The translations under genes and the position numbers were made by a program. The notes under the pieces were generated by a model. That model did not search any database, was not told where the DNA came from, and saw nothing but the letters and a program-made list of their open reading frames with translations. Shown here one piece after another: positions 7,985 to 45,400 of a DNA stretch of 64,000 nucleotides (its first letter is position 1; each line of letters begins with the position of its first letter). Origin of the DNA: Chlorokybus atmophyticus (Eukaryota; Plantae; Mesostigma and Chlorokybus algae); contig RHPI01002204.1 in the NCBI GenBank assembly GCA_009103225.1, forward strand, positions 248,001 to 312,000, given 5' to 3'.

Positions 7985-12019
<4,035 letters not shown>

Positions 12020-13704: not shown

Positions 13705-16700
13705 TCCAGCATCAGTCTATTTGAAACGGGTGACTGCTGTGCAGCCCATATACATACACGAATCAATGTACCAGGGTGCATGTGACTCGCCACTGCCTAT
13801 ACAAGGGCGCACAATGTGCCACGCTTTGCTGTGTGCAGGTCGATGCTGTGCTGTGCTGTGGCATTTTATTTACAAGGTGTGGTTGCGGACAGTCCTCCAT
13901 CCACCAAGTCCACGCATGTACCTTGTACATTTTGCTGCTAGCAACACAAAGAACAACAGGCCTCATTGCTTGCCCTTCTAGCATCAATAACATTTGCTCA
14001 GCATATGCAATGTCCAGCATCAGTCTATTTGAAACGGGTGACTGCTGTGCAGCCCATATACATACACGAATCAATGTACCAGGGTGCATGTGACTCGCCA
14101 CTGCCTATACAAGGGCGCACAAAGTGCCACGCTTTGCTGTGTGCAGGTCGATGCTGTGCTGTGCTGTGGCATTTTATTTACAAGGTGTGGTTGCGGACAG
14201 TCCTCCATCCACCAAGTCCACGCATGTACCTTGTACATTTTGCTGCTAGCAACACAAAGAACAACAGGCCTCATTGCTTGCCCTTCTAGCATCAATAACA
14301 TTTGCTCAGCATATGCAATGTCCAGCATCAGTCTATTTGAAACGGGTGACTGCTGTGCAGCCCATATACATACACGAATCAATGTACCAGGGTGCATGTG
14401 ACTCGCCACTGCCTATACAAGGGCGCACAAAGTGCCACGCTTTGCTGTGTGCAGGTCGATGCTGTGCTGTGCTGTGGCATTTTATTTACAAGGTGTGGTT
14501 GCGGACAGTCCTCCATCCACCAAGTCCACGCATGTACCTTGTACATTTTGCTGCTAGCAACACAAAGAACAACAGGCCTCATTGCTTGCCCTTCTAGCAT
14601 CAATAACATTTGCTCAGCATATGCAATGTCCAGCATCAGTCTATTTGAAACGGGTGACTGCTGTGCAGCCCATATACATACACGAATCAATGTACCAGGG
14701 TGCATGTGACTCGCCACTGCCTATACAAGGGCGCACAAAGTGCCACGCTTTGCTGTGTGCAGGTCGATGCTGTGCTGTGCTGTGGCATTTTATTTACAAG
14801 GTGTGGTTGCGGACAGTCCTCCATCCACCAAGTCCACGCATGTACCTTGTACATTTTGCTGCTAGCAACACAAAGAACAACAGGCCTCATTGCTTGCCCT
14901 TCTAGCATCAATAACATTTGCTCAGCATATGCAATGTCCAGCATCAGTCTATTTGAAACGGGTGACTGCTGTGCAGCCCATATACATACACGAATCAATG
15001 TACCAGGGTGCATGTGACTCGCCACTGCCTATACAAGGGCGCACAAAGTGCCACGCTTTGCTGTGTGCAGGTCGATGCTGTGCTGTGCTGTGGCATTTTA
15101 TTTACAAGGTGTGGTTGCGGACAGTCCTCCATCCACCAAGTCCACGCATGTACCTTGTACATTTTGCTGCTAGCAACACAAAGAACAACAGGCCTCATTG
15201 CTTGCCCTTCTAGCATCAATAACATTTGCTCAGCATATGCAATGTCCAGCATCAGTCTATTTGAAACGGGTGACTGCTGTGCAGCCCATATACATACACG
15301 AATCAATGTACCAGGGTGCATGTGACTCGCCACTGCCTATACAAGGGCGCACAAAGTGCCACGCTTTGCTGTGTGCAGGTCGATGCTGTGCTGTGCTGTG
15401 GCATTTTATTTACAAGGTGTGGTTGCGGACAGTCCTCCATCCACCAAGTCCACGCATGTACCTTGTACATTTTGCTGCTAGCAACACAAAGAACAACAGG
15501 CCTCATTGCTTGCCCTTCTAGCATCAATAACATTTGCTCAGCATATGCAATGTCCAGCATCAGTCTATTTGAAACGGGTGACTGCTGTGCAGCCCATATA
15601 CATACACGAATCAATGTACCAGGGTGCATGTGACTCGCCACTGCCTATACAAGGGCGCACAAAGTGCCACGCTTTGCTGTGTGCAGGTCGATGCTGTGCT
15701 GTGCTGTGGCATTTTATTTACAAGGTGTGGTTGCGGACAGTCCTCCATCCACCAAGTCCACGCATGTACCTTGTACATTTTGCTGCTAGCAACACAAAGA
15801 ACAACAGGCCTCATTGCTTGCCCTTCTAGCATCAATAACATTTGCTCAGCATATGCAATGTCCAGCATCAGTCTATTTGAAACGGGTGACTGCTGTGCAG
15901 CCCATATACATACACGAATCAATGTACCAGGGTGCATGTGACTCGCCACTGCCTATACAAGGGCGCACAAAGTGCCACGCTTTGCTGTGTGCAGGTCGAT
16001 GCTGTGCTGTGCTGTGGCATTTTATTTACAAGGTGTGGTTGCGGACAGTCCTCCATCCACCAAGTCCACGCATGTACCTTGTACATTTTGCTGCTAGCAA
16101 CACAAAGAACAACAGGCCTCATTGCTTGCCCTTCTAGCATCAATAACATTTGCTCAGCATATGCAATGTCCAGCATCAGTCTATTTGAAACGGGTGACTG
16201 CTGTGCAGCCCATATACATACACGAATCAATGTACCAGGGTGCATGTGACTCGCCACTGCCTATACAAGGGCGCACAAAGTGCCACGCTTTGCTGTGTGC
16301 AGGTCGATGCTGTGCTGTGCTGTGGCATTTTATTTACAAGGTGTGGTTGCGGACAGTCCTCCATCCACCAAGTCCACGCATGTACCTTGTACATTTTGCT
16401 GCTAGCAACACAAAGAACAACAGGCCTCATTGCTTGCCCTTCTAGCATCAATAACATTTGCTCAGCATATGCAATGTCCAGCATCAGTCTATTTGAAACG
16501 GGTGACTGCTGTGCAGCCCATATACATACACGAATCAATGTACCAGGGTGCATGTGACTCGCCACTGCCTATACAAGGGCGCACAAAGTGCCACGCTTTG
16601 CTGTGTGCAGGTCGATGCTGTGCTGTGCTGTGGCATTTTATTTACAAGGTGTGGTTGCGGACAGTCCTCCATCCACCAAGTCCACGCATGTACCTTGTAC

Positions 16701-18327
16701 ATTTTGCTGCTAGCAACACAAAGAACAACAGGCCTCATTGCTTGCCCTTCTAGCATCAATAACATTTGCTCAGCATATGCAATGTCCAGCATCAGTCTAT
16801 TTGAAACGGGTGACTGCTGTGCAGCCCATATACATACACGAATCAATGTACCAGGGTGCATGTGACTCGCCACTGCCTATACAAGGGCGCACAAAGTGCC
16901 ACGCTTTGCTGTGTGCAGGTCGATGCTGTGCTGTGCTGTGGCATTTTATTTACAAGGTGTGGTTGCGGACAGTCCTCCATCCACCAAGTCCACGCATGTA
17001 CCTTGTACATTTTGCTGCTAGCAACACAAAGAACAACAGGCCTCATTGCTTGCCCTTCTAGCATCAATAACATTTGCTCAGCATATGCAATGTCCAGCAT
17101 CAGTCTATTTGAAACGGGTGACTGCTGTGCAGCCCATATACATACACGAATCAATGTACCAGGGTGCATGTGACTCGCCACTGCCTATACAAGGGCGCAC
17201 AAAGTGCCACGCTTTGCTGTGTGCAGGTCGATGCTGTGCTGTGCTGTGGCATTTTATTTACAAGGTGTGGTTGCGGACAGTCCTCCATCCACCAAGTCCA
17301 CGCATGTACCTTGTACATTTTGCTGCTAGCAACACAAAGAACAACAGGCCTCATTGCTTGCCCTTCTAGCATCAATAACATTTGCTCAGCATATGCAATG
17401 TCCAGCATCAGTCTATTTGAAACGGGTGACTGCTGTGCAGCCCATATACATACACGAATCAATGTACCAGGGTGCATGTGACTCGCCACTGCCTATACAA
17501 GGGCGCACAAAGTGCCACGCTTTGCTGTGTGCAGGTCGATGCTGTGCTGTGCTGTGGCATTTTATTTACAAGGTGTGGTTGCGGACAGTCCTCCATCCAC
17601 CAAGTCCACGCATGTACCTTGTACATTTTGCTGCTAGCAACACAAAGAACAACAGGCCTCATTGCTTGCCCTTCTAGCATCAATAACATTTGCTCAGCAT
17701 ATGCAATGTCCAGCATCAGTCTATTTGAAACGGGTGACTGCTGTGCAGCCCATATACATACACGAATCAATGTACCAGGGTGCATGTGACTCGCCACTGC
17801 CTATACAAGGGCGCACAAAGTGCCACGCTTTGCTGTGTGCAGGTCGATGCTGTGCTGTGCTGTGGCATTTTATTTACAAGGTGTGGTTGCGGACAGTCCT
17901 CCATCCACCAAGTCCACGCATGTACCTTGTACATTTTGCTGCTAGCAACACAAAGAACAACAGGCCTCATTGCTTGCCCTTCTAGCATCAATAACATTTG
18001 CTCAGCATATGCAATGTCCAGCATCAGTCTATTTGAAACGGGTGACTGCTGTGCAGCCCATATACATACACGAATCAATGTACCAGGGTGCATGTGACTC
18101 GCCACTGCCTATACAAGGGCGCACAAAGTGCCACGCTTTGCTGTGTGCAGGTCGATGCTGTGCTGTGCTGTGGCATTTTATTTACAAGGTGTGGTTGCGG
18201 ACAGTCCTCCATCCACCAAGTCCACGCATGTACCTTGTACATTTTGCTGCTAGCAACACAAAGAACAACAGGCCTCATTGCTTGCCCTTCTAGCATCAAT
18301 AACATTTGCTCAGCATATGCAATGTCC
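13705..18327. repeat. Head-to-tail tandem array, 15 x 308 bp, bounded by TCC microhomology
   Basis: The unit starts TCCAGCATCAGTCTATTTGAAACGG and recurs every 308 bp (13705, 14013 ... 18017); (18325-13705)/308 = 15. The only difference I found between copies is T versus A at 13815 in copy 1. Confidence 0.97.
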
Positions 18328-18730: not shown

Positions 18731-21700
18731 TTACTTCTTGCTCGGTGCTCCAGCATTGAGAATCACTTCATGCAGCAGTTGGGACAGCATGTGATCGTGG
18801 TGGTGCCTATCGCGTCCTTTGTGCGGCCTACCATTCTCCCTCTCTCTTTGTCTTTGCCCCTCTCTTCCCAAAGCAGGCTCCAATTCTCCATGCTTCCGCT
18901 TTCCAGCGCCGTGCTGCTGGTCAGCAGGAGCACTATCATCACCCGCGATGGATGCTTGCAAGTCCTTCAAGAGCCTCGATGCCAAGTCAAGGGCCACTTT
19001 AGGCATGCCTGCGGAGATGCCTGGACCCATCTTGCCGACGAGCTCGGATGCACTGAGCAGCGCCTCACCGACATCGTCAGACGCGCCCGCGCGGCCTCCC
19101 GCCTCGGCAATGAGGGACTTCTGTTCCTGAGTGGCTCGCCCGTGCACGAAAGCCACGAGGGCTTGCAATGTGTGGAACAGAAGCTTTCCTGCCTTCGCAT
19201 CATCGCCAAGTCCCAGCGGAAGCGCCAGCACTGCTAGCCTATATGCAGACACGTGGCTCAGTGCCTGCAGCCTCAGTTAAGACCTTCAGGGTTGTATGAA
19301 ACCTACCATAAAGCTGGCTTTATCGGCTTGTGGCTTGCTGAGACTGCATCCAGGCTCGCCAGCAAGTCCTGACAGGGCACATGGATGGTTACAGTAATGA
19401 GTATGTAGCACATGCATGCTATCCTACAAATTGCCTTCAACAAGCTCTATATAACAGCAGGCCAGATCAGGCTCAGCTCAGCATCAACATTGTGCTCTGC
19501 CAAAGCACTCACCAACAGAACAGCTCGCTTCTTGGATGACTTCTTCGTGTAGTCCAACGCTTCAAGATGCTTTTGCTGCAATGGTATACACGCCTGAGCA
19601 CTCATGAGCATATGTAAGCAGGTCAAGAAGCCACAGACCAGAGGGCCATACATGCCATGGTAACAATGGCTGGAGGATGTCCAAGCGATACAACATCTTC
19701 AGCGACTGCTCCGCAGCTCCGTAACTCATGAGCGACTCCAGCTCAAGCGCTAACCTTGACTGCCAGGGAAGATGTCAGAGAGGCTAGCTATGACAGAGAC
19801 TGCGCTGAAAACAGACACCATGCCATGGTGCCTACCGAATTGATACCGGAGATGAGATGTGATGAAGACTTCAAAGCGGCAGAGGTGCTTGCCCTGAGGT
19901 TGAAGCCCATACGCGCGGCTACTCGAACAGCGCGCAACATACGTGCTGCACAGCAGAAAAAGTTGTTAGTGCAACGGCAATACCATGATGTCCCAAGCTA
20001 CCTTACTCATAGACATGCTGAGTTGATGGCAGCCTGTCAACCCCTAACACTGAATGAACAATGAACACAAAACATTATCCATTGACAACTCAATGCACCT
20101 GGATCCTCCGTGAATGACTGTGCAGGGGTAAGGATTGTTTGCACCTGCACGACAACCCAGTCTTGGATATGTTGACATTGACATCTGCCGAGGAGGCTGC
20201 AATCGCCATGCATAGCAACCACAGCCATGAAACAAACCTGTCACTCACTGTTCCGGCGTGCAGGTCCTTGACGCCACCTACGTAATCGTAAAGCGTCTTC
20301 TGAAATGGGTCATAAAGTAACCTATTCATAAGCAAGCAATGTGGTTAGAGCGCGACAGGTGCAATTTTGCCCCATCATAGCATAGTCAGCTTGCACGAGA
20401 GACAGATGCAACTTACACACTACAAATGGCATCGAACCCAACAACAACAGGTCAGGTCAGGCGACAGTACCCATTGACCGTAAAGTCTCTTCGCAGCGCA
20501 TTTGCCTGCAGCACGAGCTCCCTCTGCTGCTCATACTGCTGCCAAGCTTGCTGCCTGTCTAACAGCTGCGCAGCTGTTAGCGTCTGGTTGTTGCTCTCGC
20601 GGTTGTCAATGTGCAAGCGAGGTATCGGCAACAGCTCTGGAGGTTTTGACTGTGCCGAGCCCAATGACTTGGGAAGCCTGGCTGTTTCATTGAAGCTAGT
20701 GACCTGAGCAAAGATGCGTGTTGAGAAATGCAGTGGTAAGAACCACAGAAACAATATGCCAAGTCATCTCACCTACCTCAAAAACATGGGAGCCTAAGTT
20801 AACTCGCGCCACACGGAACCGCTTGCCTACAATGATGGCACTGTTGAAGAGCTTCTTGACCTGCATGAGTGCATGTTGGAATGTACCTGCGCGACAGCAA
20901 ACTCACGCGCATGGTATTCCTATAATCCAGTACCCTGTTGGGCGAAGCTTGGGAGCAAATGTCGTAATCCTTGGGCAATCTGCCCAAGTACAAGTCGCGC
21001 ACGCATCCACCCACAAGATACGTCTCGTGTCCTAAACAACAACAGCAGCAGTGCCAAGCATATAAATGACCACCCAAAGCACTGGTTTACACGGCTTCAA
21101 ATTTGCTCCATGTGCAAGCGACACTGACATTGTAGGTTTATTACTTGTTCTGACAATGTACCTGCAAAGTGCAAGCGATTGAGCACATGCCAAGCTGTCT
21201 TTGGTATCAGCTCATGCCAAAGCAACCACGGGCCGCATGTCATCTGCGTACATGCAAACAAAGCAAAAGCGTTAATATGTTGACGTTGCACCAATGCACT
21301 AAGCATTGTCTCTGTTTTGCGGCTTTTGCAATCAGTACACTGCACAGCTCGTTAGATGATTTAGGATCAACCCAGTTTGGCAACAACTATGTTTCATGCC
21401 CTGTGTAATGTAGCCTACCACATGCATTGCAGCTTCACATGCACCGCTCGTCATGCTGTTGTACTACTACTACAAGCTAAACTAAGCCGTTCTGCTTATA
21501 ATGTACAACTACTACAAGCTGAGCAAAAACGTACCGCGCCTGGAGCCTTGGCTGTGCTGGTGCTACGAGTACTCCTGCTCTTGCTGCTGCTGCTGCTGCT
21601 GCTCCTCTTCTTCTGCGCCTTCTCCACCAATGCGGGGGAGGCGAGTGCATGGGCAGCCGCCCGGGTGACATCCTCATCCCTGACGACGACATCATCCGCA

Positions 21701-25580: not shown

Positions 25581-28500
25581 TTATGTGGAGAGACTGAAGC
25601 CGCCGCCGGTGTAGCGCGTCTGCGTGGGTTTCAGTCCCATCGGCTGCACACCGCCAACAGGATTGTGCACGGGCGGGTTGCCATCCGCATGGAACTGCTC
25701 TTTCCTCCTCTGCAGTGAAGTTGAGCACAGTCAGTCACAGACACAACAAAGCAACTGATTGTGTGTGTGCGTTCGTGCGCGCGCGCGCGTGTATGCGCGT
25801 GCACGTGCGCGTGCGCATGTGCGTGTGCATGCGTGTGTGACTGTGTGCACGTGTGCGCATGTGTGTGAGTGTGACTGTGTGTGTACCTGTGCATAGTATT
25901 TGCGTTTTGTCTCTTGTAGGTCGCGTGACAGGCGGTCGATCTCATACTTGTACTCGTTGACTTGTGCCTGGTGCATGTTGAGCTCCGCCGCCATCGCCTT
26001 CATCTGCTTCGTCTTCTCACGCAGAGAGTGCTGGTACACCGACAGCTGCTCCGCAATCTCGGGCCCGGGCTAAACACATACACCGAAGGCAAGTCAATAA
26101 CGCAACAATCTACGGAGAGATGAAATCGGTAATTAACGTACACGCGGGCACACGCACGATCGCGCACACACGCACACGCGCGCACGCACACCCAGACACA
26201 CTCTGTTTTTGCATGCCCTCAAACCTGTCTTGCGAGTATGCTCTTGAGTTCGATGTACAGCTTCTCCTTCTCCTGTATGACGAGGTCCTTCTCGACGACC
26301 TCCTCCGTCTTGGCGATGAGGCGCTTCTGCAGCGTCTGGATCTTCTGGAGCATCTCGTACGTGGCTGGGTCGCTGCCCTCAAGACGACGCCACCTAGAAG
26401 CAGCGCAACACAACCACCATCAAACAGCGTGTGTGTGTGTGTGTGCGTGCGTGTACGTTTGTGTGTGCGCGCAGGTGTGTGTACTTGTGTGTTTGTGCAT
26501 GCGCGCGCGCACGCGTGTGTGTGCTTACTTGTGCGCGTGCAGGCGCGCGCATGCGCGTGCATGTGCGTGCGAGTGTGCATGCGCATGTGTGCGTGTGTGT
26601 GCGCACGTCAGTGTGTGTGCGCACGTGCGTGTACCTGTGAACATTCAGCGGCGACTCCAGCTCCTCGCTCAGCGCCTTCACCTTCGTCTTCTCATTCAAC
26701 AGCTCCCTCGCCAACCTATGCAACTCCCTCTTCACCGCATCCATCCCTTCGGCCGCCCTTCTCATCCCCGCCAGCTCCCTCGTCATCTCCGCCGCCTTCA
26801 GCTTCAAAACCCTGACTTCATTGACACGGTCGGCGTAGTGGACGCGACCCTTGGATAAGGCAGATTGCTGGATGCGGATCTTCTCGTAGAGGAGGGACAA
26901 CTCGTCGTTGCGGCGGACGAGCTGGGTGCCGAGGACATCGCGCTCGTCCATAACGGTGTCGAGCTCCTTCTTCTGGCGCATCCTGGGGTGTACGAAGAAT
27001 AGTTGTGTGAGTGCGTGTGTGCGCGCGTGTGTGTACTTGCATGGGTGCATGTCTACTTATCGCGTATGCCTGCATGCACATGCGTGGGTGCATGCGTGCC
27101 TGCGTGCGTGTATACACGCACGCACACATATATGTGTGTCCATGTGTGCGTGTGCGTGGCAGTCCACGAATGCATCGACGTGCATATGTGGAGGTGCATA
27201 CACACACCCACATGTACACCCTCACGCATGCTTGCAAACACACCCGCACTGTAAGGTTGATGCAATCAACTTGTGTAGAGTGACCAACTGTGACCTGCCT
27301 GGATACCAGAGCGACTTGTATGTCATTCTGTTTAGTCTCACCTTTCGGAGTCGGCTTCCCGCACTACTTCGTTGAGTTTGGCGATCTCCGACGCTTGCGA
27401 CGCGGCGGCGCCCTCGGCGTCGCGGATCTGGACCGTCGCGCGGTTGGCTTCAGCCCGCAGGCCCTCCTTCTCCTTCTCGACCTGAGGGTGGTGGAACACG
27501 TGCATCAGCGCATCACGAAGGGCAACTATGGTAAGATACACGAAGTCAGTGCACGTGCGCTTGTGTACATGTGTACATGTGTGCGTATGTGCACATGTCT
27601 GTACAACTAACCTTGACTCTGTCGAGGTGTTCACGTACGAGCGCCACATCCTTGGCCGCAATCTCCTCCTTCAGCTGTTCAATCTGATGCTGCATGATCT
27701 TGAACTTCCTCTTCATCTCCTGTATCTCATCCTGCGCCTCAATCGTATTCTTCGAGTACAAGTTCCTATCACTCCTGACAGCCTCATACAAGTTCTGCTG
27801 CTGTTTCAATCTATTCTCTCCCTCGGCGATGCGCTTCTGGAGTTCTAATACGGTCATTTCACGCAATTTGACTTCTTCGAGGGCGGCTAAGTATTTGGAA
27901 GAAGCGTCGGAAGCCTCGGCGCCGTATTTCTCGCGTTCGCGCTCGAGGGCGGCGACGACACGGGCTTGGCGAGCGGCCTCGGCACGGTAACCGGACACTT
28001 CCTGATGACACACGGACACGTGGGTGAGGGAGTGGGGACACCATTGCTATAATGGCTTCGGCAAGGATACATGCAACACGTCTTGCAAGCTTTGGGCTCT
28101 TTGACACCCACGCAAGCACAAGTACAAACACGTGCGCACACGAATGCATGCATACATGCACATGTGATCACAGGCACACACGCATATGTGTGCTTGTGAA
28201 GCGTCCACGTGCACACACATGCTCGCACACTCACTCATGTACATGTGCGCACGCAACTGCACGTCGACACAAGCAATCCACGCACACGCACACGCACACG
28301 CACATGTATATAACCCCACTCTCACCTGTTCCAGATTCCTCTGCGCATTCTCATTGATCTTCACCAGATCCCTCTCCTTATCCGCTTGATTCTCCGCTTG
28401 GGTCTTCATCTTGTTCAACAGATCTCTCTCCCTCAGCAGCTCGTCGCACTTCTTCCTCTCCGTCTCCGTGGCCCTCCGCGCGCTCTCCACCTCTCTCTCC

Positions 28501-30970
28501 AACGCGGCCACCTCCCCGCGCAACTCGTCGCGGGACTTCTCGGCGTCGAGGCGGGACTTGTCGAGGGACTTGAGACGGGAGAGGGCGAGCTCGCGGGCCT
28601 TGTTGACACGGGCGGTCTCCGCACGGACCTGAGAGGGGGAGGGTATAGTGTGTGTGTGTGTGCGCGCGCGCGCATGCACACGCACGTGCAAGCGCACACG
28701 CGCGCGCGCACGTGCGTGTGCATGTGTGTGTGCGTGTGCGTGTGCATGGACACCGCCTTTACCTGAGACACTTCTTCCTCCTTGACCTTCAGCTCTACCA
28801 CCCTCTGGCTGTTCTCCGCCAGCAGCTGCGTGTTGGCGTGGACCTGTTCTTCCAGGTCGGCGTGGAGCTTGGCCACCTTCTGAGCGAGGGCCTCGGCCTC
28901 CTTGCCCGCGCGCTCGGAAGCCGCGCGCTGCTCCTTGAGCAACACCTCATAACGAGCCAACTGCTCCTGGCCCTGCGGGTGGGAGTGGTGGGGGTGAGTG
29001 GGGGTGGGTGGGTGTCTGTGTGTGTGAGGTGTACATGTGTGTGCAAACGCATATGCGCGTGTGGGTGTTTGACGAGAGGGGGTGTGTGTGTGCGCGCGCA
29101 AGAGAGAGAGATGGATGGCATGCGCGCGTGTGGGGGTGGGTGGGTGTCTTGCTGAATGAGAGCCTGTGCACCCGTGCACGTGCGTGCGTTTGCGCATCTG
29201 TGCATCTCTATGTGTGCATGCAAGCGTATGATTGCAACCTACTTGTGCCACGAGTGCTTGTTTTGACCGTATCTCCGCCTGCCTCGCTTCCAGCCCTCCC
29301 CTCAGCTCTTTCATCTCCTTCTCCATCCTCTCCTTCTTCCTCTGCTCCCTCTCGGCGTCCGCCTTCCTCGCCGCGATCTGTTCCCTCAACGAGTGCGCGT
29401 CGTGCTCCGCAGCGATGCGCTCCGCCTCGGCCAGACGCAACTTCTCGGCGGAGTCGGAGACTTCAGCGCGGAGAGAGACGACCGCGGATTGGCCGGCGTC
29501 GCGCTCCTTGATCGCCTCGTCGCGACCCCTGCGTGGTGGAGTGAAGGGAGAGGTTAGTCGCTGCAGGACACGAAATAGTTCTGACCAACAAAGCGACACG
29601 CGCACAAAAGCACACGCACGTGCGAGCTCACGCGCATACACACAAGCGTGCGTGCACGCACACACACACATACGGACGCACACGTGCGCGCACACACAGT
29701 TACACATGCTTGCATGCACATATATGGAGATGCTTGTACATTTGTACGGGTGCACGCACACGCACCCATGTGCAAGCACTTGCACATACACATATATACG
29801 TGCGCATGCACACACACACACAGTTACACGCACACCCATATACACCCACACCCACACCCACACCCACACCCACACCCACACCCACACCCACACCCACACC
29901 CACACCCACACCCGCACCCACACACCCACCCCTACCTTATCGCTTCCGCCAGCGACTGTTCCTGTCCGATGCTCAATCCCGCCCCCGCCTCCACCAGCTT
30001 CCCCAGGTTCGATATCTCCATCTTCAGTTGCGCTATCGTCTCTTTGGCCCTCGCCTCCTTCTCGTGGGACGCGTCCACCATCTTCCACGCCTTCTCGATC
30101 TCCTTGCGCAGAGCGGAGATCGTCGTCTGGTCCTCCTCCGAGAGCTTCAGGGCGGTCTGGACGCGGGCGGCGTTGGAAACGATCTCGGAGTTGAGCTCGC
30201 GGCATTTCTTGATCAGGCGTTTCTCGGACTCTGTGGGAGAGAGAGAGAGAGTGAGAGAGGGTGGGTGTGGGTGGGTGTATGAGGACTTGACACAGTCTGA
30301 GTGAGTCGCTGACTCACTACATTACTCACTGGTCGTTGATTTTCTGTCTTGCGACCGTGATCTAGTGAGTGTTCCAGAGTTCCAGATTGCTCACCGTGCG
30401 ATTTGCGCAGAGCGCGGTGCAGCTTCTCGTACTCGCCGCGAAAGCGCTCGAGGGACTTGTCGCCGGAGAGTTCTTGCATGACCTCCTGCAGGTTGGGGTG
30501 ACAAGTGAGTTGCACAACAGAGAGAGTGAGAGCGAGATTGTGGGTGTGTTTTTCAGTGTGTGTGTGCGCGCGTGTGCGTTGACGGCCGCTCTGTTACACA
30601 GCAGCCTGTATACATCGCTGCGCAACCAAGCAGCATTGACGGGTAACAGCGTGTGCGTGAGTAAGGCTTTTTTCTTTGCTGTCAAAGTGCTTGACCCAAC
30701 ACAACATTTCATCAGTCAAAGGGCTTCAGACCATTCCTTCTCCAACAGCGATCTAATGTTTAAGCTGGATTGGTTGACCATGCGTGTGAGTGAGTCCTTG
30801 AGGCAACAAGCAATTTGTCTATGCTGTTCGCGCACCTGAAAATCCCTCTCCAGCGCCTCAAAGGCCTTGGCCTCGTACCCGTCGCCGCCATTGGCGGCTG
30901 CGGCCGCCTTGGCCTTTTCGTCATCAACAGCAGCCACGATCGCTGCGGCCGCCTTCTCCTGGTCCGCCAT
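25581..30970 (-). CDS. CFAP58: Cilia- and flagella-associated protein 58 (CCDC147/FAP58-like), multi-exon coiled-coil
   Basis: [127 protein letters not shown] and a C-terminal [10 protein letters not shown]. Confidence 0.93.
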
Positions 30971-34300: not shown

Positions 34301-35457
34301 AGAGTGGCGATGTGTTCTGCCACGTGTTGCGCGCATGCGAGGCAGGTATCACACGTGCGTTGGAAGGCATAAACAACCCCGCTGCGCATTCCAACCACAA
34401 CGACAGCGAGGCCAACAACAACAACAATGGGGATACCGACCAGCATGGTGCGCAACGCCTGTCTCAAAACTTGTCGCGGAGGCCCTCCCGTGCAGTTGGA
34501 AAAGAACGAGGAGGCAAAGAGCCATCTTCGCCACCCAATGCAAGCGGGGTTGTTGTCCAGCGGCTTGAGAGCATCAGCTCTGAGGAAAGTCTCAACACGT
34601 TCAGTAGCTATACCTCAAGAGAGAACACTGCATCCCCACGCAACCACAACCTGAGTGGATTCGCCAGTGCGCGCAGCTTTGCGCCGGGAGACCAACCTTA
34701 CAACTTCCGCTGCTATGCGGTGAGCTTCGCATCCACACATCAATAACCGCATGTATCATATGTAGCCACAGCACAAACGCTGACACGTACCTTGGTAACA
34801 GCCACATACATGGGCAAGAACACACGCACCTGCATGTGCACACATCTGCACGTGTACATGCCAGAACGCTTATAAAGTGGTGTGCGCGCGCGCACGCACG
34901 CACTCACTCACGTGCGCATGTGTGTACACACAATTTAACACAGTATTGCACTACGAGGTGTGACAATGCGCACGCCTTCGTGACAGGTGAGGAGCAGCAG
35001 TGCGGCCAGCAGCAACGGTTCCACGGACTCAGACTATGTTGGCAATGCGTGGGGCCATGATCGTGATGAGGATGACAAGGACGGGGCGTTGAACCGCGAG
35101 CAAGTAAAGCGGCAGTCTGCAATGATAACGGGCGGCGTGCGGCAGCACCAGAACAAGCTGTTGAGCAGACAAATGCGGTTTCTGCGCGACAAGCAACAAC
35201 AACAGCAACAGCAAAAACAGCAGCAACAAAGGCAACAACCACAGTACCGGTATGGCAAGGTCAGAGGGGCTCCCTCGCTTGACTTGGATCGAGCCTCGCT
35301 CAGGCATAAGAACAGCACATCTGGCTCACCTTGAATGTGCAGTAATGCAGTAAGTTGTTCCCTGCTTGTGAGTGATGCCGTGACACAGAAAGCGATTGAC
35401 GAACAACAGATGGACTTTGCAGAGGCAAATGCGCATGAAGTGTTGATGCCACAATAA
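31336..35457 (+). CDS. Orphan multi-exon protein with coiled-coil and low-complexity regions
   Basis: A chain of phase-compatible exons (LHKA|VQSLREECDAWEFRRKES, VLREKADRYEE, EEARRARG, VLSKSGDD, DEARTQLQ, DELQARV, VRSSSAAS, KAIDEQQMDF...PQ*), with one likely GC donor near 32447. No family recognised; the exact model is tentative. Confidence 0.6.
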
Positions 35458-35533
35458 TGTTGGGCAAGGTTAAGCAACGTGTATATTGTACAATCTGGGC
35501 TGAGTGTCTAAACCTACAATAATAGCTAAGAGA

Positions 35534-40300: not shown

Positions 40301-40545
40301 TGATGTGTAAAGCGTGTGTATGCTTGTGCTGATGCATGCCATTCATTGTCCACACCATGCATGCTGCCACCGTACCATACCCCTTATATACACAGGGTCA
40401 ATTTCGCAAGGGCCTTGTCTGTCGTATCAAAACAGCCCAGTGTTCGATTTTACACGTATTTTACAAAATTCAGCAAACGTCAGGGGCAAACAGTCATCAA
40501 CCAGTGCCCAACCTATCCTCATTCCCTCTTTGATGAGATGCATCC

Positions 40546-41357
40546 TCAGCGGTTGCTTGAGCCTGAGGCAGCGTGGCAGATGCGGCAAGGACACGCTGGG
40601 TTGGTGGACACGCAGGAGCAGGCACGGTTGTCGCCGCCGCGGACGTCCGCCAGCTGGCAGTCGCACTCGTCGCCGCACACGCACTCAGCGCGGTGCTTCC
40701 CGCACTGCAGGCAGGAGCACTCACCGCCAGTCGTGCACTTGGCGCCCTTCTGTTGACACCACATGCGAACAAGCACATAACCTCAAGTCAGCGCACAGTG
40801 TAACAAACCTCCTCCCGCTCCCCAGCACTCGTCATCAACCGCCTCCTCATCCCCCTCCTGTTCCTACTCCGATTGGCAACCACTTTCGCTCCTCATCAAC
40901 CTCGTTTCAAAGCCATCACCAACAACACCATCAACATTACCATCATCGCCATCACCGCCATCAGCACAATGTGTGATATGATGGCAGTGTTGAAGTCATG
41001 CATGCGTGCATGCAAGCGCATGGCCTTCCCCCACATGTGTGGTGAGAGCGGGCAAGGTAGTCCTGCTTTACAACCATTGAGACTGGCTTGTTGTTCAACT
41101 TACGTGCTCGCAGTGGCTGCATGAAGGCCTGCACTCCCCTGTCTTTGTGGCAGGACCAGAGGCGTGCTCGCCCTCTAGCCCCTGATGCTCAGACACCTGC
41201 ATGCATGTGTATGCGTGAGTGCATGTGCGTGTGCATGATCTGCATCTCAGCAGTGATGCACGTGTACCTTGTCCACGTGACCGTGGGGCCCCCTGTGGTG
41301 GGGATGGGGCTGGGTGCTCCTGTTGAACTTCTGATGGTCGTGGTCTGCGCCCCCCAT
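40546..41357 (-). CDS. His/Cys-rich metallothionein-like protein, 3 exons, 128 aa
   Basis: Exons 41357-41268, 41196-41104 and 40749-40546 are all phase 0 with GT-AG boundaries (90+93+204 nt). The product has 16 Cys (CxC and CxCxxC clusters) and 13 His. Exon 3 Cys codons are almost all TGC, as expected for real coding sequence here. Confidence 0.75.
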
Positions 41358-42435
41358 GACGGTGGCTCGGTATGTGTTGATGTGCGTATGCACGGAACAA
41401 CCGCCGTTGGCCACCGCACAGACACAGCGCTCAAACACTTGCAGTGTAGTCTATGGCCGTCGCCCTTGTATAGGGGTGCAGTTGACTTGAACGTTACGCG
41501 TCTGGGATGAACTAGGACATGTATCGTGATTGACAAATGCAGCATGAATCTGTGTCAGGCTGAAGTGATCCGGTGGCACTGCCACCGTGGCAGGGCAGGA
41601 CTCGTTACGTGGCACGAACGGACGGAATATTGTGTGGCGGGCGACACGATGAATCCTGCCCGTCCCTTGAGTAAAGCCCGCCAGGGGAACGGATCAGTAG
41701 GCGACAAGGGGTTACCAAGGACCTAAACACGGCACAACGTCGCGTACCCAACACGGACTTATGCTGCGTTGCCTTGTGACGCAAAGCAACACACAACTAC
41801 TGATACTCACCAATCCACTTGTCCACTTGCCTCGCAAAGCACACTCCGTCGGGCTCTCCGTTGTTTTATAGGATACAGTATGGAAGCAACAGACAACAAG
41901 CACGCATAGTCATCACAGCAAGGCAGGGTACAATTCGAGGCAGAAAACTTACTGCTCAGCGCCACGCGCTACAGCTGCAACACCCATAGCCATTGCATGC
42001 GAAAAAGCTATACGTTGCAGGCCAAAGACATGTGCTCTGAAAGCAAGCAAGCGTCCACGAAATTATGTCACGCGTGCAAGTTTGCGACACTACATGGCAC
42101 ATAGTTACACTCTTCAAACGCCAGGTTCAGCAGCAAGCACCACTCCAACCCGTCAGAGGGCTAAGAAGGCATTGCATTCGCATTACAAGTTGTGCAGATG
42201 CATCAATGCGCGGCTTATATCAACAGCAGCAGGCCTTGCCGTTGGTGGCCAAGCATGCGCAAGTCATGCGTGGTCCTTCTTCATGCATAGCACACGCGGT
42301 TAGAGCAGGCTTGAGGCACTGTGCACGCCTGTAGCAGCAATAATCAAGGCCTATGTCGCATGGACCCTACTCAGAGGGAATACTCAAGTTCATAAACAAA
42401 TAAAGCCAACGGGTTCTGAACTCTATCATGACTAT

Positions 42436-45400
42436 TTATGGCCTGTGCGATTTCGACAGCAGGTCCTGTAGCATCGCGGAGCTCCTCAAAGCATGCCGTT
42501 CCAGCGCGGCCTCCATATCCGCAGCGAGCCTCTGTGAGTACCTCGACAACAGCGCCTCCGCATCAAAACCCGCCGGAGAAGCTGCCGAAGGCAGACCTGC
42601 CATTGACAAATGAGCAATTGAGTGACTTGAGTAGTAGTTTACACGTACTACCACATGTACACCACACGAGTATTGTGTGCATACAAGCATGCTGAAGCAT
42701 GACCGTCCTCATAATGAGACGGTTGTGATGTGGGAATGCGTGCATCCATGGGGTTTGGCGTAATGCGCAATCCACAACCAATAGCAGTTCCCACTCACTT
42801 GTGACCGAGGAGGAGCTGTGAGAGAGGGCGCGTTCGAGCTTCTGCTGCACGCTGGCCACAGCGGAGGTGACGCGCGTCTCGACGATGGCAGGTGCGATGC
42901 CGGCGGGTGTGCCTGCCGAGCTTTCACTGTCATCAAACAACGATGATGAGGATTGTGAAACTCTCAGCTGCTCCATCAGCCGGCAGACTTCATCCGCGGC
43001 TGCAGATAGCCTCAGCAGCGCTGCATCAAAGTGCTGCGGGAGTGACTGCTGGTGCTGTGTGGATGGCTGTCTTTGCAAAGGCTGCTGTTGTGGCGCTTGC
43101 TGCTGTTGTTGTGATGGTTGATGTGGTGGTTGTGGTGATTGTGGTTGTTCGCTGTCCCTGGGTTGCGGCCTTTTCACTGTTTGCATGCGCGCATCGGAAT
43201 CCGTCTTTGCCTCTGCATAAGCAGCATCCACATCTGCACATGCAACTAAACGGTCAGAAACATGCTCAATGAAGCATGCACGTAGTATAGCACAACATGC
43301 AGCAAGCCCACCCATCTGATTGTACCTGCTGTTGCGTTGCTGATGGCAGCAGGAGGGCGCTTTGCATAAGCACCCAGCGACGACTCATTAATCCCAACAA
43401 TGCCAGTTGTACTTGCAACATCACCGCCATCAGCTGTCTCCGTCCACGCCCCGTGGCCCCACTCGGCCACAACTGCATTACTGTTCCGCGGTTGCTCCAG
43501 AGCCTCAGCAGCGCTCGTGGATGCCGATAAGCGCAGCTCCGCCAAAGCCGCGTCCACAAATTGGTTCTGCGGGATGCTTGGTGCCCTCTTCACGGGGGAG
43601 GCGATGGTCATAGCCGGGGAGATGTTGGAGAAGTCTACGGCGTGAGCGGCTGGAAGAGATGCAGCATCTGGTTGTTGGTGTTGTTGCGGTTGTTCTTCCT
43701 TTCTGGGTGTGGGCGTTTCTTCCTCCGTAGAGGCCTCAGCAATGCGCGCAGCGACACGCTTTTCGGGCCTCGACTCCGATGCACGCGTTGCATCCTTGTC
43801 CTTGCCAAGCCGAATGCCCAACCCAGCTAGCCTCTGCCTCATGAGCTGCACCTCGTGCGCCATCTGTGCCTGCAGACAGGCACAAGAAGAACACTTGATG
43901 CACATACCCAACACATTGACACAATATTACAACAACCTCAACACCTGACCCTACCTGTCGTTCACGGAGCTTCAACCGCTCTCTCTCGGCCTGCAAAGAG
44001 CGGTCCACTCGGATCTCTTCGTCTTGTTTGTCTGGAACAGCGCCATCACCCTGGATGTTGCCGTTATTATTGTCAACCTTCTCCTTGTCCTCCTGCTGCT
44101 GCTCTGGTGGCGGTGGACTCCCACCGCGCGCAAAGAACCGTGCAGAGTAACTCAGCCTCGTCGACATCCTTGGCTGAATCTACAAGACCATAATATAACA
44201 GAAACGCCACCTCAACTACGAGTGTGCAAGGCCAGGCCACCAACATGCTGTCAAACGCGATGACACGCCACACACAGTGAGAACAACCTGCGCACCTCTT
44301 TGATGTCTGCCGACAATCGGTCAAAATGCAGCGCGAAGAGGTCCGCCCTGGGGCTGATGGAGATTTCTACTTCAGGCTCGTTGATATCAGTGACGCTCGG
44401 CTCGGCTTTGGTCTCCGTGTCCTCGCCCTCGTTGCCGGCATCGTCCGGGCTGGACACATTGACCTCGGCGGATGAGGCTTCAGCGGAGACCTCGGCGGCG
44501 AGCTTGGAAGAGACAGCAAAGGCTCCGTCCTCATTGACCTGGTCGTCCATGGCGTCCTCGTAATACACCGTGTCCTCGTTGTCGGAGAGGATGTCCGCCG
44601 GGGGCGCCCTTGCGTCCATGTAACACGCGTCCTCCACATCGGAAAGGTATAGCACTCCGTCCTGGTCTTCCATGGAGGAGCTGCTTTGCTGGACAGCTGC
44701 ATGACACAATCAAACACTCACTCCCAACAACTTGTGCCGCACCAATGGCAACAACTTGCGTGGTCAAGAGGTGAACGACACATACATATCACGACACTCA
44801 CCTGCTTCACCCGCAGGTGCATCTTTGGTCATTGATTCACTCACAAACTCCGTTGCATCCACGGGCAAAGCGCCAGCGTCAGCTACATTATGCTTATCAT
44901 TGACATCCTCGTCATCAGCGCTTTCATCTTCTTCGGCTGTAGCTTCCAGCGCTTGCCTGCAGCCAGTAGTATCAGGACACACGCAAACAACTTTTGTGCA
45001 TGTGGGTGACAGTAAAGTGGACACGCACTCTCTGTTGTCGTCGGGGTGCAAGTGCTCAGCTCCTTCAATGGTGAACCGTCTGCGCGGGGCGCCGGCTACG
45101 GCCCGTACTGTTGTGTCCATGACAGAGAAGAGCGTGTAGCCATCCTCGCCTACACGCTGCGACGCCAGCACGACAATTCATTAATCTCAACCCACTTTTC
45201 CAAGCAGCATCATGCACGCAAGCTGTGAAACACATAACGATTTCAATAACAGACCTCTGCCCATCTGTTGGCTGGCAGGTTGCCGTTGGGCGACGCAGCC
45301 TGCATCTGCTTCTTGAAGCTGTCGGGTGTCTTGTCTTTCGTTGGGTTTGCGGTCCAGTTGGCCTACAAATACACCCGTTGCGCAACAGTATCCTGTAACA

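Follow-up and report, generated by a model that had tools for sequence, protein, structure and literature searches.

The window analysed here, a 64,000-nucleotide stretch of the Chlorokybus atmophyticus genome, carries on its minus strand (41357..40546) a gene of three exons joined by GT-AG introns, every junction being in phase 0. The encoded product comprises 128 amino acids, among them 16 Cys, 13 His, 16 Gly and a single aromatic residue (Phe), and is referred to below as P0001. Exon 1 (41268..41357, minus strand) provides 30 codons (residues 1-30 of P0001) which form a His-rich leader with seven His and no Cys, at a GC3 of 0.87. It is separated by intron 1 (41197..41267; 71 nt, GC 0.52, junctions AAG/GTACAC...ATGCAG/G, with a short (GTGCAT)n repeat inside) from exon 2 (41104..41196), the 31 codons of which (residues 31-61) add four His and the first three Cys. 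In exon 2 the proposed frame is the sole stop-free frame on the minus strand, and GC3 periodicity is absent. Intron 2 (40750..41103) is longer (354 nt, GC 0.52, junctions CAC/GTAAGT...CAACAG/A) and includes, at 40913-40963, an imperfect microsatellite of the CATCAC type. A plus-strand ORF of 220 amino acids with a His-rich tail (40314-40976) was rejected as a second His-rich gene, being antisense to the gene, with its tail read from this same CATCAC/CAACAC microsatellite. Exon 3 (40546..40749) consists of 67 codons (40749..40549, residues 62-128) followed by the TGA stop codon (40548..40546); it contains 13 Cys, 12 of them encoded by TGC, as well as all five CxC motifs of the protein, and has a GC3 of 0.85.

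Upstream of the gene the frame is closed by an in-frame TAG (41451..41453, minus strand) located 94 nt before the ATG, which makes the ATG at 41357 the first of the frame. A putative TATA-like motif, CTATACAA, read directly at 41473..41466 on the minus strand, lies about 110-115 nt upstream of the ATG. On the other side, two TGTAA pentamers (40450..40465, minus strand) are found 81-98 nt past the stop codon and are candidates for a green-algal poly(A) signal; as TGTAA occurs in the window at chance frequency (115 found vs 107 expected), the pair lends little weight to such a signal. The palindrome CATGCATG is about threefold over-represented in the window (20 found vs 7 expected, a count that none of 100 shuffles reached), with copies in the two introns of the gene and in its 3' flank (e.g. 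at 40356, 40997 and 41200), and its over-representation appears to be a genome-wide feature. The TATA-like motif is contained in a 13-mer, CTATACAAGGGCG (41461-41473, minus strand), that is also present in every copy (13797-18121, plus strand) of a 308-bp tandem satellite situated at 13705-18327 (15.0 copies, 99% identity). A link between the TATA site and this satellite was considered and set aside as probably a coincidence: the alignment does not extend, about 0.5 exact 13-mer matches between the satellite unit and the remainder of the window are expected by chance according to our own estimate, and Rfam gives nothing at either place. The lack of an Rfam match also indicates that the satellite is neither a 5S nor an snRNA array. 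The window further includes a multi-exon alanyl-tRNA synthetase gene (8273-12016, minus strand; at least seven exons, Pfam tRNA-synt_2c and tRNA_SAD), the exons of which find their best matches, at 54-90% identity each, in land plants and Closterium. This gene served as the internal reference for codon usage and introns.

When the exon-3 ORF was used as query in a word-index protein search, a single protein was returned, P0001 itself, which forms a cluster of one member and bears the source name jgi/Chlat1/1321/Chrsp118S01748. The Chrsp prefix denotes gene models of Chlorokybus atmophyticus (PMC10796333). P0001 consists of the translations of exons 1, 2 and 3 (residues 1-30, 31-61 and 62-128, respectively) without anything extra, and the spliced gene is already part of the public annotation of this alga as Chrsp118S01748. 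The literature search found no paper that joins Chlorokybus with metallothionein, and none that carries this gene identifier. In the analyses described below the exons were searched one by one, and all full-length analyses used the database protein P0001.

P0001 has a mass of 13.5 kDa, a pI of 6.9 and a GRAVY value of -0.91, and only 11 of its 128 residues are hydrophobic (LIVMFWY). It has no hydrophobic stretch at its N-terminus and no signal peptide. The protein falls into two parts. Residues 1-49 contain nine His, arranged in HxH, HH and HGH motifs, and no Cys, while residues 50-128 (79 amino acids) contain all 16 Cys (20.3%), four His and no aromatic residue. The Cys are placed in clusters of three (positions 52, 56 and 59), eight (66, 72, 74, 77, 84, 86, 90 and 92) and five (105, 107, 114, 116 and 119), with gaps of 6 and 12 residues between the clusters, and His 58, 61, 80 and 120 are located in or beside them. 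Five CxC motifs, each following E or A, and three CxxC motifs are formed but no CC; a random placement of the Cys gives at least five CxC and no CC with P = 0.006. An earlier note on this DNA had described three phase-0 exons, a product with these numbers of Cys and His, almost no aromatic residues and no signal peptide, and a TATA-like motif about 110 bp upstream. The present analysis reproduces the translations exactly, on the minus strand, together with the residue counts, the position of the motif and the absence of a signal peptide. The note had also presented the gene as missed, which holds for a plain ORF track but not for the public annotation, where an identical model exists.

Searches for relatives of the protein were performed at several levels. 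In Pfam-A (hmmscan) neither P0001 nor any of the exons matched a family at E up to 10, and a PDB sequence search (phmmer) gave nothing below E = 1 and noise only. An exhaustive phmmer search of 1.84 billion cluster representatives, in which composition filters may hide Cys-rich kin, returned the query alone. A metagenome contig scan with exon 3 yielded 585 pattern matches, none of which was confirmed, and tblastn of each exon against the window found no paralogue. As a control, an exon of the alanyl-tRNA synthetase gene of the same genome was used as query in a search that scores only proteins 0.55-1.75 times the length of the query, and within this length range nothing closer than 64% identity was obtained. 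The fact that the control tops out at 64% identity suggests that the database may lack close relatives of Chlorokybus. In such a database a protein that is short, fast-evolving and Cys-rich is expected to look like an orphan, and the absence of relatives is therefore uninformative. In the absence of a homologue, selection is likewise not demonstrated for any of the Cys or His positions. Among the language-model look-alikes in the ESM Atlas, Metallothio_PEC (PF02068) scored 0.75 for the whole protein and 0.78 for residues 50-128, with which it has 171 features in common, and it ranks together with Metallothio_5 (PF02067, 0.76) in the group of named clusters closest to the Cys domain. The nearest named cluster of all was the fungal DUF7871, situated beside the metallothionein clusters. 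All these scores (the best being 0.75-0.78) are below the level reached by shuffled proteins too and serve as leads only.

As P0001 has neither a hydrophobic core nor a signal peptide, and carries 16 regularly spaced thiols, it would be ordered only by metal ions. The likeliest reading, which we hold at about an even chance, is that of a cytosolic metallothionein-like metal-cluster protein with a His-rich leader, the function being proposed from composition only. In such a protein the Cys domain (residues 50-128) would fold solely around metal-thiolate clusters, in the manner of metallothioneins, and would bind, in the cytosol, some 5-6 Zn(II)/Cd(II) ions or a larger number of Cu(I). The His-rich leader, being flexible, would supply Zn/Ni/Cu sites of lower affinity and may capture ions or hand them over.

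The same residues may, however, hold metal for another purpose. P0001 could be a real protein in which Cys and His bind a few structural zinc ions in modules resembling zinc knuckles or zinc ribbons, and the job of which is other than buffering, such as the binding of nucleic acids or of a partner, or that of a redox or ROS-scavenging thiol protein. The spacing of the Cys is compatible with this, as CxxC/CxC pairs 6-12 residues apart could make Cys4 or Cys3His sites. Furthermore, although AlphaFold2 run without an alignment is uninformative (mean pLDDT 51, no confident fold), it places short beta-hairpins, at low confidence, at 80-84/90-94 and 105-109/116-119, and the nearest named Atlas cluster, DUF7871, is not a metallothionein. 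On the other hand, no zinc-finger or other Pfam family is detected at E = 10, no sequence in the PDB matches, and the Cys domain lacks the conserved hydrophobic or aromatic residues that are usual in small zinc fingers. We consider such another zinc- or thiol-based role unlikely, but it is the likeliest of the alternatives. A match to a known non-metallothionein domain, such as a zinc finger, had been named in the earlier note as an observation that would speak against its interpretation, and the Pfam and PDB searches gave no such match.

In order to judge whether the Cys-rich reading corresponds to a gene at all, the coding signal has to be weighed against the character of the surrounding DNA. 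The GC content falls from 0.63-0.69 in the exons to 0.52 in the introns, and the change coincides exactly with the proposed splice sites. For both exon 1 and exon 3, GC3 exceeds that of the first two codon positions (0.55-0.61) with Fisher p = 0.004 and p = 0.0006, respectively, and the 13 Cys among the 67 residues of exon 3 compare with 2.7% expected from base composition (p = 3e-8). A coding signal beyond chance is thus present in exons 1 and 3. The synonymous choice is extreme (TGC 15/16, GAG 8/8, GAC 7/7, AAG 6/6 and CAC 10/13), and 46 of the 50 two-fold codons have G or C in third position, a share that is about 64% in the exons of the alanyl-tRNA synthetase gene. So strong a preference suggests a high level of expression, in line with a role in metal buffering. 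When the six frames were compared with a codon-usage table built from the alanyl-tRNA synthetase exons, the proposed frame scored best in exons 2 and 3, whereas in exon 1 an antisense frame (+5.4 bits) scored above the proposed one (-0.1 bits). In terms of period-3 signal, exons 1 and 3 rank only in the top 6% of all windows. The splice sites and introns share their style with the authentic introns of the alanyl-tRNA synthetase gene (n = 6), which are 65-270 nt long with a GC content of 0.42-0.49, and which use the donors GTACGT, GTGAGT, GTATGC, GTAGGA and GTAAGA and acceptors of the TGCAG or ACAG type. According to Tandem Repeats Finder, repeats are confined to the introns of the gene and the exons are without any tandem repeat.

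Further Cys-rich ORFs, with 14-26 Cys, occur in the window at 26398-27251, 42822-43118 and 21486-21665 on the plus strand and at 27938-28358, 29557-29823 and 35037-35507 on the minus strand. These were rejected as genes, as they are translations of simple sequence of the TG/CA or (TGC)n type (CVCVCA/CCCCCC runs) without GC3 periodicity; they use TGT and TGC in mixture, and mostly have 22-36% hydrophobic residues. They show how readily Cys-rich ORFs can arise by chance in the Chlorokybus genome, which calls for caution. The public model and that of the earlier note could both be ab initio constructions over GC-rich, mostly open DNA, in which case the locus would be non-functional and its Cys-rich reading accidental. 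Most of the six frames are indeed open across exon 3, so that an open frame alone means little there, about nine other regions of the window reach at least 13 Cys per 67 amino acids in some frame, exon 2 lacks periodicity, and the protein is without detected relatives in a cluster of one. However, the remaining Cys-rich ORFs differ in character, being derived from microsatellites, while the exons of the gene are free of repeats, and the sharp GC step between exons and introns, the GC3 periodicity of exons 1 and 3, the synonymous bias and the genome-typical splice sites all argue for a functional gene. The missing relatives count for little in view of the 64%-identity control. An accidental reading is consequently regarded as improbable, while Chrsp118S01748 is probably a real, expressed gene. 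The best explanation of the locus is a genuine, spliced and lineage-restricted protein-coding gene of Chlorokybus atmophyticus.

The metallothionein-like reading of this gene invites a comparison with the described metallothionein (MT) families. The MT superfamily is polyphyletic and encompasses no fewer than 15 unrelated families, which as a rule are specific to a lineage and share no similarity with one another, and MTs have been defined operationally as proteins of at most 300 amino acids with less than 10% aromatic residues and 15-35% Cys, the Cys being arranged in CxC, CxxC or CC motifs and binding several d10 metal ions in thiolate clusters (PMC7216689). P0001 agrees with this description in size (128 amino acids), in aromatic residues (0.8%) and in Cys motifs (five CxC, three CxxC, no CC), and is likewise CxC-rich, hydrophilic and without a hydrophobic core. 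Its Cys content is below the range when the whole protein is counted (12.5%) but within it for residues 50-128 (20.3%) and residues 52-119 (23.5%). Among the plant families, types 1-3 have two Cys domains with a Cys-free spacer of 31-44 residues between them (PMC10603854). P0001 shares with these proteins (PF01439) the CxC/CxxC motifs, the low molecular weight and a spliced gene, but its longest internal Cys-free gap is 12 residues and the Pfam family is not matched. The type 4 (Ec/PEC) proteins have three stretches of 6, 6 and 5 Cys, two conserved His and a length of about 80-84 residues (PMC5756572, PMC10603854). They resemble P0001 in being small, cytosolic (as P0001 is predicted to be), free of aromatic residues and of the streptophyte lineage, and in having three CxC-dominated Cys stretches, the last with five Cys, and His within the Cys region. 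The layouts differ, nevertheless, as 6+6+5 (17 Cys), spacers of about 15 residues and a length of about 80 amino acids stand against 3+8+5 (16 Cys), spacers of 6 and 12 residues and 128 amino acids, and as Ec proteins lack a counterpart of the 49-residue His-rich leader. As to the two His which form the Cys2His2 site in the second stretch of type 4 proteins, the second cluster of P0001 has one, H80, and is unalignable to the family; H58 and H61 belong to the first cluster or follow it, and H120 is past the last Cys. Neither layout of the plant types, nor a Pfam profile, is thus matched, in keeping with the statement in the earlier note that the protein does not correspond to plant MT types 1-4, and P0001 should not be filed in plant MT family 15. 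Taken together, the observation made in that note is confirmed, whereas its interpretation, a new two-domain algal metal-buffering protein, is partly supported.

The weakest of the alternatives is that P0001 is truly homologous, though very divergent, to the type 4 MTs of land plants, in which case the base of the streptophytes would be the position of this family: although Metallothio_PEC is among the nearest named Atlas clusters and the likenesses in Cys stretches and in His inside the Cys region point the same way, the Atlas scores are under the stated noise level of the tool, the PF02068 profile is unmatched at E up to 10, phmmer finds no plant MT, and the differences in Cys distribution and length remain, which makes such homology very improbable.

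The metallothionein-like metal-cluster protein is accordingly the reading that we retain, and it may be carried one step further. We tentatively propose, as a possibility that is rather less than probable, that P0001 is the founding member of an undescribed MT family of the deepest-branching streptophyte algae, in which a His leader would feed or gate the 16-Cys domain, and which could be related to the ancestral form of the Ec metallothioneins of seed plants. Short, disordered and His-dense stretches (HxH, HH) have been proposed to bind Ni, Zn or Cu, and the leader of P0001 is alike in composition only; it differs from the known stretches of this kind in that the His-dense segment is fused to a Cys-cluster domain. 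This layout of a His leader and a Cys cluster is unusual. A review published in 2020 listed GenBank-annotated MTs in few microalgal genera and none in charophytes (PMC7216689).

At present Chrsp118S01748 is an annotated hypothetical protein for which a function in metal binding is plausible by composition alone. Chlorokybus is a soil alga on the earliest branch of the streptophytes, the plant MT types have been defined almost wholly from land plants, and lineage-specific MT-like proteins are common. If verified, the His-leader and Cys-cluster protein of Chlorokybus would represent a new layout in the MT superfamily and would offer a test case for the cooperation of His and Cys sites in the buffering of zinc or copper.
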